Assembly: GCF_001194135.2 (NCBI RefSeq)
Contig: NC_068982.1
Location: forward strand, 109,550,941-109,614,940
DNA: 64,000 nucleotides
Reading direction: 5' to 3'
Source: Octopus bimaculoides
Taxonomy: Eukaryota
Notes under the pieces: model-generated
What the model saw: the letters and a program-made list of their open reading frames with translations, nothing else
What the model was told of the DNA's origin: nothing
Databases searched by the model: none
Shown here: positions 6,062 to 56,705 of the stretch, piece by piece
Position numbering within the stretch: position 1 is the stretch's first letter
Layout: each line of letters starts with the position of its first letter
Position numbers and translations under genes: made by a program

Positions 6062-6360
6062 ATGAAAACTTCGTCCCCAAGAATAGGAACGATGATGGAT
6101 GTAGTGGAAACTGCAAGACGATTGTGATCGCTGTTGTGTCTGGATTCCTGTGTTTTACGTACGCAATCATACTCATCTACTGCATGTGGCGCTGTCATCG
6201 GCACAGGCGTCACAATAACAAAACCAACAAGAAATACCCTCCAGGCAGTGTTTCCATGTCAGCAGTACATTCTGATTATGTTGAAGAACAAAACCGTCTA
6301 GTATCACAAAGTAACATGGCCGATCTTGCAGCTCCAAAATCTATAGATGGACACTCAGAG
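6062..6360 (+). CDS. RET: RET-like receptor tyrosine kinase: transmembrane + juxtamembrane exon (equivalent to human RET exon 11)
   Basis: Acceptor tttctctttcaag (AG 6060-61) and donor GAG|gtaagc (GT 6361). Phase 1 start, phase 0 end. Encodes DENFVPKNRNDDGCSGNCKTIVIAVVSGFLCFTYAIILIYCMWRCHRHRR...SIDGHSE. CSGNCKTIVIA aligns with RET CDELCRTVIAA (C630/C634), followed by a hydrophobic helix and a basic stop-transfer segment. Confidence 0.8.
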
Positions 6361-8425
6361 GTAAGCCAGTTTCATGCGCTGTAAGAGAGAAGAAGTCAGC
6401 ATTCCAAAAGTAAAATCTCGGCCTTAATTCTTTCTCAGAGGAGCTAATAACATATTTTTATTATATGTTTAAGGTGTTTCTTTGTACATATTGTTTTTCA
6501 TTGTTCGTTTTTGTACCTAATTTATACAGTAAAACATTCATTAATATAAACTGTGAATGTTTCTCTTTTCATTGAAAATATTGTTTCTTTTATTTTTTTG
6601 TTTATTCTTAATTTAATGTTGACATGTCCCGAAGTACAACAACCATAGAATATATAAGTGTTATAGAAAGTATGTTGCATTGCATTACGTTGCCAATGAA
6701 ATGCCGATTTTTTTAACATGTACATTCAGTTATTGATGATAAATAATTGAATGGATTCTTGAATACCGGATTTCAATGGAAATCATTTCAAATTGCCGTT
6801 GGTGCCCGAGCATTCTTAGAGTTTTCCTAAGAAGTTAATAAATTCTACGAAAAAATTTCAAGTAATTTCATATTTTACTAAAGACCAAAATAAACCGTTT
6901 TGAATATATTCNNNNNNNNNNNNNNNNNNNNNNNNNNNNNNNNNNNNNNNNNNNNNNNNNNNNNNNNNNNNNNNNNNNNNNNNNNNNNNNNNNNNNNNNN
7001 NNNNNNNNNNNNNNNNNNNNNNNNNNNNNNNNNNNNNNNNNNNNNNNNNNNNNNNNNNNNNNNNNNNNNNNNNNNNNNNNNNNNNNNNNNNNNNNNNNNN
7101 NNNNNNNNNNNNNNNNNNNNNNNNNNNNNNNNNNNNNNNNNNNNNNNNNNNNNNNNNNNNNNNNNNNNNNNNNNNNNNNNNNNNNNNNNNNNNNNNNNNN
7201 NNNNNNNNNNNNNNNNNNNNNNNNNNNNNNNNNNNNNNNNNNNNNNNNNNNNNNNNNNNNNNNNNNNCACTGAGTTAATGATATTGAACATTCAAAGAGT
7301 TGGAAAAAGTTACTTGTCACGTTCAATAACTATATCGTTGTTGAGACCAACTGACAGAACAATAAAATACTCCAGCACTGGTGAAGCAGGTTGTGGTCTA
7401 GATATTCAAAGAATATATTTTCAATATAGACAATTTGGGAGAGAAAAATTCATATATATTTGTATGTGTGTGTGTGTGTATACACACGCACATACACACA
7501 CACACACACACACACACACACACACACACACACACACACACACACACACACATATATATATGTGTATGTATATAACTTTCACATTAACTCTTTCTCTTCT
7601 TGTGCTATTTCTATTCACCTCAAGACTTTGGCCACCGCTTCTCTGTCTGTCAATTTTTCTTTCTTTCACTTTCTCTCTCACACACACACACTCTCTCTCT
7701 CTCTGTCTCTCTCTGTACACACACATATACGCACACAAGCACACGCACAATTATATAATATTGTTAGTGAGGTGTATCGCTCGTCTCTGAAATAATCGTA
7801 CAAATATATTTATACATAGAAATAAATGCACATACTTATATACGTAAGTTATAATTCATATGATAAGTAATTATACCATATGTGTCCATGTATATATGTG
7901 CTTGTGTGTATGCATATGCTTGTATGTATATATGTATGTATATGTATATGTGGAATGTGTGTAATATAAATTCATATACGGACTTGTATACTCATACAAG
8001 CACACAAACACACACACACACACACACACACACGTACATATATATATATATATTGTTTGACTGTTATACTTGGGGATGCTCATATATTTTACCAATTAGA
8101 CATATGCACTCAGCCAAGTGTTTTTTCTGCAGAATGTGCGGAGACACGTGGGATACAGAGTTGCTGAAGAAGTTTCAGGATAAGTGACGAAAGAGCTTTT
8201 ACAAAGAAAGAAAAAGGATAATAATAATAAATCTGAGGTGGATACCAAATATATAGTGCGTGTGCTTTATTAGCAAAAAATACAACCATCACCAAGTATA
8301 AAAATATGTTTTAACGCACGATTCCACAACAAAAATCTTACAAAACAAATACATAAATACACACACACACACACACACACACACACACACACACACACAC
8401 ACACACACACACACACACACACACA

Positions 8426-9592
8426 ACGAGTGAAAAATTCATAGGTTGACCATGATATTTTCATGGAATATGACCAAAAGACGAGAATTTTTCAACTTAG
8501 TCCTCCTTGCGGTCCATACACGTCTCCAATAGGTGTTGCAGTGCTTGGATTCCATTGGTGAAGAAGCTCTCATCCCGTTGGGTAAAAAAAAGTCATCAAC
8601 AACAGATATGACGTCATTATCACTGCGATACTGGTTATCAGCCAAGTGTTTTTTTTTTCCAGCTGGACCCAAACCAGGAGCTCAGAGAGTGTGATCAACC
8701 AGTTCAATGCCATAGTCACGCACAGTAGCCATTGAAAGCAAGGACTTGTGTGCTGGAGCATTATCCGCATGAAAGAAAAGAAATCCTTTCGTCAGTTTTC
8801 ATAGGCGTTTGGTCATGATAGCTTTTCGTAACTGCCTCATCTAGTTGAAATAGTGCTCCACATTGATGGTGTGGCCTCCTTGAATATAATGAACATGCAT
8901 CCCAAAAAACTGATGCCATCTCTTTCCCTGCAAATAAAACGACTTGGCATGCTTTGGAGTAGATGAGGAAGGGGGGGGGGTTCACTGCATAAATTGTCTC
9001 TTTTTCTCTAGTTGAAAGTGATGAAGTCAAAACTCTTCCTGGCTTAGGAAAAGTTCAAAGAAACCAGCTAGATTTGCCTGAAACATTGTCAGATTTTCCC
9101 GCGATGTGTTCAAACTGGTGTGCTTTTGATCAGGTGTCAAAAAACATGGTAGCCACCGAGCAGAAACATACGTCATGCTAAGTTCCTTGATGGTTGCACA
9201 TCTAGAACTTGAGTCATCATCAAGACTATTTCTCTCTCTCTCTCTCTCTCTCTCTCTCTCTCTCTCTCTCTGCAACCCCTAACTTCAGTTGCCCACTTTT
9301 GTGTGGTTGATAAAGCTAGAACGCCATTCATTAATGAAGCAACCATGTCAGCATGCAGGTCATTGTGAGATACACCCATTCCTGTCCGTACACGATGGAA
9401 ATTTTGTCGATTTCAAAAGAGGTCTCTTGGAGTTACATTCGAAGTCTTCATTGAATAGTGAGATGTCAGTTTATCTGGAAGGACATTATGCAGTTATTAA
9501 CAATACTGGTTAAAAGTAATGCATGCAAGATTCCACAATTCTAGTATCACTTCTTCATAATCAGCCTATTAAATTTTCAGCGCCCTGAAAGT
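8426..9592 (-). mobile_element. Decayed mariner transposon, with internal (TC)n expansion 9229-9271
   Basis: Minus-strand remnants VSARWLPCFL, MASVFWD and ADNAPAH. Degenerate terminal repeats tgaaaaattcataggttga / tcagcctattaaattttca. Same family as 45101-45905. Confidence 0.85.
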
Positions 9593-54171: not shown

Positions 54172-56597
54172 GTAAGTTAAATAAGACACTAGACAAAACC
54201 TTTTCATTTATATTTGCATATATACTTTCTCTCATGTTTTTAATGTTTCAAATTATCTCTATAAACAAGGAGTTTGTTTGATTGGGATGTTCCACCAATA
54301 ATGCTTCAGCTGGAAAATTTACTCCACACCTTAAATACTTTTTATACTTCTCTCGGGACAGTCCTTTAGAGCATAGTAGTGTATGAACAAATAGTATTTT
54401 TGGACTGTAGCTGGCTAATCGCATATATAAAATCTCTTGTATATCTTACTTCACCAATCCTACAAGCTTCCTAAACAAACTCAGGGATGGATCTTGTGAA
54501 TGCATGTACAATAGAACTCAGCCTTGGGTGGTTGATAACAATGCGACATTGCTCTTTATGATAATTGATTTATTAGACATTAGTTTTGCTATGATATCAA
54601 TATCAGCATTTAAAATCAATACTTTATTAAGCTAATTTATGTTGGCTACTGCAGTTATATTGGTGACCTTCTTTCATTATCATTTTATTATTGCAGAGTC
54701 CTAGCATGCAACATTTATAGTGGTAAGATCAACCAATGAAACTGTTGAAAACTGGTATTTCGTCTGATTAAATCAGCTTCAAGAAAAACAGCTTTGTTGT
54801 TAACAGTAGAAACATTTTGTAACTAAAGAATAATTCCTTAGATTCCGGCATTAAGCTAAAATCTTATGTGGAAAATTCTACCATAGATTAACATCCCATC
54901 CAAGACGAATGATATTTCTAAATTCCTAATGAAAATGCCTTCTATGAAAATGCCTTCTATGAAAAGGAGCTATATACACTGTGTAACGTCTAGTAATACC
55001 TTCATATGAGTAAGAAAGTTAACGCAAAAATTAAATACGTAAAAGCTGATATGTTGAGTGAAGCTAGCACTAATCATCGCACGAATGTTTTGTCGCAAAG
55101 TTTCAATTTTAATGTGAAACCATTTACTTATGCTAGAAACATGCATTGTTTAGAAACTGTGGTATGATTTAGAAGATGCGTGAAACTTTCATTTGCTATA
55201 TATTCAATAGTTAAGACGGTTAATGCTTGATTAAGTTCATTGTTATTTATTTTGTAGTAACATATCAGTTTATTATTTATCCTCTATTTGGTACCACTAA
55301 CTAAATTTTGGCTAAAGCGCCTTATTGAATTGTCACGCGGCACCTGATTGTACAATATTAAATATACGATGGAAAATAGCTGGTGTATTCTACACAGGGA
55401 ATAGAATGAAACAAAGCTTTTATTTCTTGTATATATATTTCAGAAAATTAAATGATGATCCAGGAAATAAGTTATAGTTACAAACATATCTAGTTGATTA
55501 TGAACAGAGTGCACAGAAATCAAAACACACATGCACATACATACATTCACTAAGTGCATATATAGGCACAGATGTCCTTTCGAAATAATCCGTTCATGCG
55601 CAGGATGAAAAAAATTCACTGCAGAGAGATTTTTTGAACACTCTGTATATATGCATGTATCTTGCGTGTTGCAAGGTATGTATATCTATATATACATTTA
55701 TGTATATGTGTGCGTGTGTATGCGCATGAGTATCTAATTATTTATTTATTTACTCGTGTGCGCATACACACATACATACAAAATGTAATACAAAACTTAA
55801 GTTTTGAAACAACAATTTTTAAAGCTTTCGCTGTAAAGCTTTAGTCTGATGTAAATGGAACTTACTATACTCTTCACACTCAGAAATATAAAGGAAATAG
55901 ACCTAACAGATTTCACACTTCGTTGTTCAGCCACCAGAGAACAAGTACCCTTCATTCTTTTGCCCATGGAGACAAATTATTGCAATCGCTACATCTTTAG
56001 TGAATAACAAAATGTATTTACATATGGTTAAAAGTTCACAGGGAAGCCTTACAATTCATTGTTTTAAATATATCTTAGTTTGTTTCTAATACACGATGTG
56101 TTGTACATAAATATTCATTAATTATATATATATATATGTACATATTTACCTGAATATATGAGTGCGTATGTGTGAGAATGTGTGTATGATTGTTTTGTAT
56201 AATAATTAGTCAATTTGCTTTGGATAATGTGAACAAGCAAAAAATAAATGAATATCAACATCTAACAAAACAATGTATAATTGATATCTATAATCATGAT
56301 TTGACTACATCGTTAATATACTTTATAGTAATATAGATTTCTCATGATATATGATGATGAGTTTACAGCAATGGAGTAGTCCCTATTAACAATAATCTGA
56401 GGCAATGCTTACACAAATGTAACGTAAAGAAGATAGGATAAACAGTGTCATCTGTGAAATCTGCAGATTTTAAGAAAATCCCAAATAATTTGATATAATA
56501 TAAATCAGAATTAATTTCAGCTTTTTCGAAAATAAATCATATGTATGGTTTAATATGATAGCGAAGCTAATCTTATTGTTAAACGTATTTATTGTAG

Positions 56598-56705
56598 ATG
56601 GTTCGAGTGGAAATGACAGGCAATATCTTTGGTCAGAATTTATCCTACTTAGAAGTTTAAAGCATGCCAATATCATCCGATTAATTGGCGTTTGTTCTTG
56701 GAGAG
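56598..56705 (+). CDS. RET: RET-like kinase exon, alphaC/subdomains III-IV (equivalent to human RET exon 13)
   Basis: Acceptor tttattgtag and donor G|gtatgt. 108 nt, phase 1 to 1. Encodes NGSSGNDRQYLWSEFILLRSLKHANIIRLIGVCSWR, which aligns without gaps to RET [36 protein letters not shown]. Confidence 0.88.

Follow-up and report, generated by a model that had tools for sequence, protein, structure and literature searches.

Human receptor pseudokinases, which are phosphorylated in trans, signal by scaffolding or as allosteric partners, and a 2026 review recognizes eight receptor tyrosine pseudokinase families, RET not being among them (PMC13259870). HER3, PTK7, ROR1, ROR2, RYK, EphA10, EphB6 and STYK1 are single-pass receptors with a conserved fold and substituted catalytic motifs; the human examples include QxGxxG and DNA in RYK, ALG in PTK7 and GLG in STYK1 (Table 2 of PMC13259870). 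By the sequence definition given there, a kinase domain that lacks the VAIK Lys, HRD Asp or DFG Asp is a pseudokinase, and loss of the DFG Asp is likewise taken as defining in PMC13519141. In the RET family itself, the protostome orthologue Drosophila Ret is catalytically active, carries the canonical VPVKWMAPE segment and has an oncogenic M955T allele (PMC5199340). Here we describe a stretch of 64,000 nucleotides of the Octopus bimaculoides genome (NC_068982.1, positions 109,550,941 to 109,614,940 of the forward strand; hereafter the window), which contains three exons of a RET orthologue, and we propose that the RET of coleoid cephalopods is probably a conserved pseudokinase that works as a scaffold or as a trans-phosphorylated receptor. 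In its conserved fold and substituted motifs the cephalopod protein is like the receptors listed above; unlike in the eight recognized families, its conversion would be lineage-specific, within a family that is active in flies and vertebrates. Searches of the literature gave no relevant paper on a RET pseudokinase in octopus or in invertebrates, and a conserved pseudokinase form of cephalopod RET appears to be unreported.

Catalytic motifs of cephalopod RET

Motifs were compared by aligning the full-length Octopus protein P0003 (CAI9717068.1, 'proto-oncogene tyrosine-protein kinase receptor Ret-like [Octopus vulgaris]'), which was found with a 35-residue peptide of the third exon, to human RET, and were checked in Argonauta and in the more distant orthologue P0039. 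The HRD motif (human H872-R873-D874) reads H-G-D in P0003, and the segment S891-D892-F893-G894 reads F-N-L-R, with NLR in the place of DFG; relative to human RET these are the changes R873G, D892N and G894R. Both activation-loop tyrosines, Y900 and Y905, are absent from a loop that is three residues longer than its human counterpart, and the APE-equivalent A-I-E has become D-P-N. HGD, N[LF]R (NLR or NFR), DPN and the activation-loop changes are common to Octopus, Argonauta and P0039. Every cephalopod sequence has Asn in place of the DFG Asp, by which cephalopod RET, as read from its sequence, fits the field's definition of a pseudokinase. The catalytic Lys (K758) and the alphaC Glu (E775) are kept, as the initial annotation had claimed, and so is N879; the beta3 motif reads VTVK, with Thr for A756, and the gatekeeper V804 is Met.

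The suspicion of a pseudokinase was raised in the initial annotation from the glycine-rich loop, and the loop change itself is real: in the alignment, human L730 is Asn and G731 is Arg in Octopus, with G733 and G736 kept. Yet this loop is the weakest part of the evidence, being variable among cephalopods, and what supports the suspicion are the motif losses in exons outside the window. At the G731 position Octopus has Arg, P0039 has Gln and Argonauta hians (P0038) has Gly, within a canonical GDGKFG, while the Asn at the L730 position is constant among the cephalopods compared. With GxGxxG intact in Argonauta, the glycine loop is not the key lesion, and the G731 position seems to have drifted (R, G or Q) once the remaining lesions had become fixed. 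Taken together, RxGxxG (in Octopus), VTVK, HGD, NLR and DPN, with Y900 and Y905 absent, depart from the motif set of a catalytically competent kinase, and the cephalopod protein is best described as a RET orthologue by descent and architecture and not as a canonical RET enzyme.

The Met at the gatekeeper position (about residue 860 of P0003) corresponds to the human drug-resistance change V804M, and Phe replaces the Ser before the DFG-equivalent (about residue 940). V804M and S891F, combined with L730N and A756T, suggest a remodelled, possibly occluded, ATP pocket.

The C-terminal tail retains motifs of the kind that vertebrate RET uses, YLDL and NxxY. G-Y-L-D-L aligns to human D-Y1015-L-D-L, and V-Q-N-S-L-Y (V-E-N-S-V-Y in P0039) follows the same hydrophobic-x-N-x-x-Y pattern as human I-E-N-K-L-Y1062; the latter equivalence is by motif only, as the two segments were left unaligned by MAFFT. 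Both types of site are also conserved in Drosophila Ret, which is recognized by antibodies to human pY1015 and pY1062 (PMC5199340), and because the human-site antibodies recognize the fly protein, the Y1015- and Y1062-type sites are ancestral. We propose that the kinase-like domain would be unable to transfer phosphate efficiently and that the receptor would no longer phosphorylate itself; it would signal instead as a ligand-regulated scaffold or allosteric partner, with the Y1015-like (GYLDL), Y1062-like (NSLY/NSVY) and juxtamembrane tyrosines being phosphorylated by another kinase. This trans-phosphorylation model is patterned on ErbB3/HER3 and on the Wnt-pathway receptor pseudokinases of the PTK7, ROR and RYK group.

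Conservation and selection

In cephalopods the kinase-like domain is the most constrained region of the protein. Its identity to O. vulgaris is 97% in Argonauta and 90% in P0039, against 69% and 52% for the ectodomain and 83% and 72% for the transmembrane (TM) and juxtamembrane part; decay is thereby excluded, and the pattern speaks for a function that has been retained and is probably non-catalytic. P0039 is the uninterrupted 1,167-residue product of L005, a contig of 3,763 nucleotides from run SRR8281666 of a distant cephalopod, and L005, which encodes it on one contig, is therefore a spliced mRNA. Compared with L005, differences fall at codon positions 1/2/3 in the numbers 6/2/25 for the second exon of the window (22 codons synonymous, 7 non-synonymous) and 5/4/20 for the third. 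By the method of Nei and Gojobori the proportions of non-synonymous (pN) and synonymous (pS) differences are 0.21 and 0.72 in the first exon and 0.079 and 0.81 in the second and third, which encode the N-lobe. Synonymous sites between Octopus and L005 are saturated and non-synonymous change is rare. The same bias is seen in the orthologous genomic exon of another cephalopod (L001-L004), found through P0001, a 127-residue genomic open reading frame that was retrieved with the joined peptide: differences between the first exon and L001 number 22/18/56 by codon position, identity is 68% inside the exon and about 50% in the flanks, there is a single in-frame indel of 3 nucleotides, and the same AG and GT are kept. 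The lesions are thus fixed in a kinase-like domain that is under strong purifying selection, and the gene is not a decaying one.

Because Drosophila Ret is an active kinase, the cephalopod state is the derived one. Whether the conversion of RET to a pseudokinase predates the split between octopods and the lineage of P0039, with strong constraint on RET ever since, we regard as an evenly balanced matter; that lineage, which may be squid or cuttlefish, is distant enough for synonymous sites to be saturated against Octopus.

Membership in the RET family

The claim of RET orthology made by the initial annotation is borne out by four kinds of sequence feature: the cysteine-rich domain (CRD), the ectodomain profile, the kinase scores, and the exon sizes and phases. 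The RET-specific domain RET_CRD (Pfam PF22540) is matched with E 1.2e-28 and 99.8 bits, against a cut-off of 26, over positions 1-103 of the 103 in the profile, and it is present in all five cephalopod sequences scanned. With a profile built from the ectodomain only, the extracellular domain of zebrafish RET (7AML) is matched at 8.5e-34 and those of human RET (4UX8, 6Q2J, 6GL7) at about 1e-31, the remaining matches showing weak cadherin similarity only, around residues 170-290. The match to the RET ectodomain structures is colinear over cadherin-like domains (CLD) 1-2 (68-253 to 68-238, E about 6e-5) and over CLD4 with the CRD (389/426-591). The CLD matches in Pfam stay below threshold (Cadherin, 27.6 bits against a cut-off of 28.8; RET_CLD1, 13.5 against 26.4), and the Pfam scan of the cephalopod sequences gave no match to a CLD3 or CLD4 model. 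The cadherin-like domains of the cephalopod ectodomain are thus partly verified.

The kinase domain of the full-length protein matches the Pfam kinase model over 9-256 of 258 positions. It scores 234.9 bits with human RET and 205.8 with FGFR2, the best other single domain, a margin of 29 bits that persists in the profile version of the search (248 and 218 bits). An EGFR chain that was listed at the top of the kinase matches was rejected as the best match, being a tandem two-kinase construct in which two stretches of 130 bits are summed. An AlphaFold2 (AF2) model, built from an alignment of 20 sequences, reached a predicted local distance difference test score (pLDDT) of 75.6 and a predicted template modelling score of 0.80 (the single sequence gave a pLDDT of 37.7). 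The model is bilobal and its top fold matches are RET kinase domains with FGFRs interleaved; confidence is low at the glycine loop, the kinase insert and the activation loop, and nothing is concluded from it on occlusion of the ATP pocket.

The peptide encoded in the window, of 185 residues, is by itself matched by Pfam PK_Tyr_Ser-Thr (E 2.3e-7), and its best match in the PDB is human RET, in a gapless alignment of 91 residues. Exon phases (1-0, 0-1 and 1-1) and the 108 nucleotides of the third exon agree with human RET exons 11-13. Much of the kinase-exon pattern is common to FGFR genes as well, and the exon structure consequently supports the RET/FGFR group rather than RET alone.

Overall, the cephalopod protein is like human and vertebrate RET in having, in the same order, a putative cadherin-like region, the RET CRD, a CxxxC-[KR]T segment, the TM helix, a juxtamembrane segment and a split-free tyrosine-kinase fold. 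It is unlike human RET, beyond the kinase motifs, in that the CRD and the CxxxC are separated by a proline-rich linker, about 65 residues long, that carries an additional CNC pair.

Three exons and an annotated gene

The assignment of the three exons in the window, which are internal and consecutive, to the Octopus RET orthologue as counterparts of human exons 11, 12 and 13 is solid on sequence grounds (Table 1). Direct reading agrees with the three forward-strand exons, their AG/GT ends and the in-frame joins that had been proposed for them. After the first 2 nucleotides are skipped, the joined exons give one open frame, whose product reads ENFVPKNRNDDGCSGNCKTIVIAVV...SIDGHSE/VLAGPWEI...NNRDGKFG...VTVKIAR/NGSSGNDRQYLWSEF...IGVCSWR (slashes mark exon joins) and contains, in this order, the CxxxC, the TM helix, a basic stop-transfer stretch, the juxtamembrane segment and the N-lobe of the tyrosine kinase. 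Polypyrimidine tracts are good, donors are GTAAG or GTATG, and the acceptor of the second exon is the sole in-frame choice among nearby AGs. The third exon, equal in length to human exon 13, ends within the codon aligned to human G798. The human sizes of 257, 148 and 108 nucleotides, with the phases that the octopus exons share, had been given in the initial annotation; they are confirmed by the Human Genome Variation Society intron numbering of human RET, c.1880-, c.2136+, c.2284+/c.2285- and c.2392+ (PMC3321559). The phases claimed for the octopus exons were also correct, as were the Cys codons (6100-6102 and 6112-6114) and the sites of the loop, Lys and Glu.

Table 1. Features of the RET orthologue in the window (positions are those of the window)
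Feature	Position	Strand	Description
Exon corresponding to human RET exon 11	6062..6360	+	299 nucleotides, phase 1 to 0, AG/GT; last ectodomain residues with CxxxC, TM helix, juxtamembrane segment (P0003 residues 669-768)
CSGNC Cys pair	6100..6114	+	directly before K-T and the TM helix; direct reading
Predicted TM helix TIVIAVVSGFLCFTYAIILIYCMW	6118..6189	+	24-residue hydrophobic stretch, followed by basic stop-transfer RCHRHRRH
Juxtamembrane motif VSMSAVHSDYVEEQNRLV	6250..6303	+	Tyr in acidic context; near-invariant in all cephalopod sequences
Intron between first and second exons	6361..54020	+	47,660 nucleotides as assembled, six assembly gaps
Exon corresponding to human RET exon 12	54021..54171	+	151 nucleotides, phase 0 to 1, AG/GT; kinase N-lobe beta1 to beta3 (P0003 residues 769-818 and 1 nucleotide)
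Glycine-rich loop N-R-D-G-K-F-G	54075..54095	+	HMMER alignment to human L730-G731-E-G733-E-F-G736
beta3 catalytic Lys (VTVK)	54159..54161	+	human K758, kept; Ala of VAVK is Thr; alignment to human RET
Intron between second and third exons	54172..56597	+	2,426 nucleotides, GT...AG ends, gap-free
Exon corresponding to human RET exon 13	56598..56705	+	108 nucleotides, phase 1 to 1, AG/GT; helix alphaC to beta4 (P0003 residues 819-854)
alphaC Glu (SEF)	56636..56638	+	human E775, kept; alignment to human RET
Next intron, start	56706..64000	+	gatekeeper, HGD, NLR and DPN exons lie beyond the window

Judged by its pattern and its distance from the TM helix, the CSGNC pair is the predicted positional equivalent of human C630-x3-C634-R-T, and the residues C, C, K and T of CSGNC-KT are invariant in five cephalopod sequences. 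The TM helix is strongly conserved among the orthologues. In the juxtamembrane segment, S-D-Y-V-E-E-Q is invariant among the cephalopod sequences compared, and VSMSAVHSDYVEEQNRLV is a conserved motif of putative function.

The gene had been called hidden in the initial annotation, and this does not hold: NCBI already annotates it, with exactly these junctions, as Ret or Ret-like in O. vulgaris, O. sinensis, O. bimaculoides and Argonauta hians. The 90% cluster of P0003 comprises XP_029655451.2 (Ret, O. sinensis), XP_014784477.1 (Ret, O. bimaculoides) and QHX41560.1 (Ret-like, O. vulgaris), and the exact 185-residue peptide is present in all four entries (CAI9717068.1, XP_029655451.2, XP_014784477.1 and QHX41560.1). 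Other orthologues are P0038 (Argonauta hians Ret-like, 79% identity), P0039 (64%) and P0040. The exon-exon joins proposed for the window are matched both by these annotated Octopus proteins and by the orthologous spliced transcript L005, whose product joins ...SIEGHSE/VLAGAWEI... and ...VKIAR/NGSSG... in the same places. As a gene finding, the locus with its exon structure is ordinary, and the three exons had been annotated before.

Weighing the alternatives

That coleoid RET is a conserved pseudokinase is put forward here from motifs and selection, and several points weigh against it. The beta3 Lys, the alphaC Glu, the catalytic-loop Asp (Asp874) and the Asn (Asn879) are all kept, weak or atypical activity persists in some proteins that are counted as pseudokinases, and an Asn in the place of the DFG Asp could support nucleotide binding. 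More speculatively, adenosine-to-inosine editing in coleoids, by recoding AAY (Asn) to GAY (Asp), might conditionally restore a DFG-type Asp; the Asn codon of the DFG-equivalent is AAT in L005. The decisive motifs lie outside the window and come from predicted proteins and one transcript assembly, the AF2 model, whose confidence is only moderate, gives no reliable view of the ATP pocket, and the equivalences of the docking tyrosines rest on short motifs. The four retained core catalytic residues are also what would keep cephalopod RET active as an atypical kinase, if Lys758, Glu775, Asp874 and Asn879 suffice with unusual metal and ATP coordination and if the non-RD HGD loop means independence from activation-loop phosphorylation. 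Kinase-domain conservation of 90-97% would fit a working enzyme too, a canonical GxGxxG is kept in Argonauta, and several receptor pseudokinases still bind ATP (reviewed in PMC13259870). An active enzyme is nevertheless unlikely: in all species the Mg-binding Asp of DFG is Asn and its Gly is Arg, the APE Glu and both activation-loop tyrosines have been lost together, and several ATP-site residues have changed (L730N, A756T, V804M, S891F), a coordinated loss that is typical of pseudokinases.

The remaining explanations concern the identity of the gene. A RET-derived paralogue, beside a second and catalytically canonical RET elsewhere in cephalopod genomes that carries the enzymatic function, is a distinctly improbable account, and there are no signs of it. 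The gene goes by the name Ret at NCBI for three Octopus species, it preserves the RET architecture in full, and RET is reported to be without paralogues in vertebrates (PMC7619074) and single-copy in the oyster kinome (PMC4883820). No second cephalopod RET turned up in searches that were too insensitive to prove its absence; the protein search with P0003 gave only cephalopod orthologues and one fish PDGFRA, and was insensitive enough to miss other RET and FGFR proteins. The many assembly gaps, the very long introns in the window and the UniProt model A0A0L8G3B5, truncated at the donor of the first exon, might hint at a decaying pseudogene or an artefact of the gene model or assembly. Such an origin is scarcely credible when four annotations or assemblies made independently agree on the sequence and a spliced transcript of a distant cephalopod carries it too, and it is effectively refuted by the open frames, by substitutions biased to third positions with pN far below pS, and by lesions common to lineages with saturated synonymous sites. 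A neighbouring receptor tyrosine kinase of the FGFR or Cad96Ca/Stitcher type has in its favour that exon structure alone fails to separate the families and that FGFR kinase domains are the next-best matches, FGFR being the sister family in the FGFR/Ret tyrosine-kinase grouping (PMC8662651). Unlike cephalopod RET, however, FGFR has an ectodomain of Ig domains, without RET_CRD or cadherin-like domains. The RET-specific CRD, the colinear match to the RET ectodomain, the lead of RET kinase domains over FGFR by 29 bits and the CxxxC-[KR]-T, which immediately precedes the TM helix as it does in human RET, lead us to reject membership of this type, which is exceedingly improbable.

Introns, assembly gaps and repeats

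The exon upstream of 6062 and all exons past 56705 lie outside the window, the gene spanning 286 kb in O. vulgaris. Searches of the window by tblastn with the human RET kinase domain and with P0003 gave no RET exon beyond the three, and an upstream CRD exon was not found by tblastn in 1-6061, where the sole apparent match is a CT-rich microsatellite. This (CTC)n/(CTT)n tract (5873-6050) adjoins an assembly gap (5680-5872) and ends about 20 nucleotides before the acceptor of the first exon; it is in effect a giant polypyrimidine tract, and it gave a spurious match to the proline-rich linker of the protein. There are 11 runs of N in the window, all in introns or flanks and none within or adjoining an exon. 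The length of the 47.6-kb intron is uncertain because six of the runs lie inside it. No coding sequence is lost in the gaps, as annotated proteins of three other Octopus assemblies and transcript L005 join the three exons directly.

The donor of the first exon is followed by 24 intron nucleotides (6361-6384) that are conserved between Octopus and two distant cephalopods (L001 and L006/L007), in the form GTAAGC......CATGCG.T.T[AG]A. This segment has an in-frame stop 8 codons on, after VSQFHAL, VSSTHAL or VSSTHAI. RNA-seq contigs from SRR27666071 and SRR27666085, spliced upstream, read through the donor for about 100 nucleotides, and the UniProt model A0A0L8G3B5 likewise ends just past it. The read-through could represent a RET isoform that lacks the kinase and consists of ectodomain, TM helix and juxtamembrane segment, or else just pre-mRNA from which a very long intron has yet to be spliced.

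The long intron is full of microsatellites and transposon remnants. Among them is a mariner/Mos1-type remnant at 40348-40980 on the reverse strand, with an open reading frame of 210 residues (Pfam Transposase_1, 1.4e-25); another, at 2945-3247 on the forward strand, lies upstream of the first exon and matches HTH_48, the helix-turn-helix of Mos1 transposase (3e-4). An interspersed repeat of about 200 nucleotides has two forward copies, 91.6% identical, one in each of two RET introns (57118-57319 and 50026-50226). The forward-strand open reading frame at 23120-23473, of 117 residues and containing RLYSLERRRERNVVIYIWKILEGIVPNFG, has no Pfam match; we take it to resemble the C-terminal tail of non-LTR retrotransposon ORF2 proteins. 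An Rfam scan of the window gave no match.

Implications for RET biology

RET is among the best-studied oncogenic receptor kinases, and no GDNF-family ligand is known outside vertebrates (PMC3527400). If coleoid RET is a conserved pseudokinase, RET would join, as a ninth, the receptor tyrosine kinase families in which a pseudokinase occurs naturally, and it would be able to work without its own catalysis; the surfaces that matter for such a function would be pointed to by what the cephalopods have kept, PLCgamma- and Shc-type docking motifs alongside the kinase fold. Cephalopods would then serve as a natural test case for how RET signals independently of its kinase, by way of docking sites of the Y1015 and Y1062 types that are phosphorylated in trans. 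Annotation pipelines call this gene plain 'Ret', and a transfer of vertebrate kinase activity or inhibitor sensitivity to it would mislead cephalopod neurobiology.

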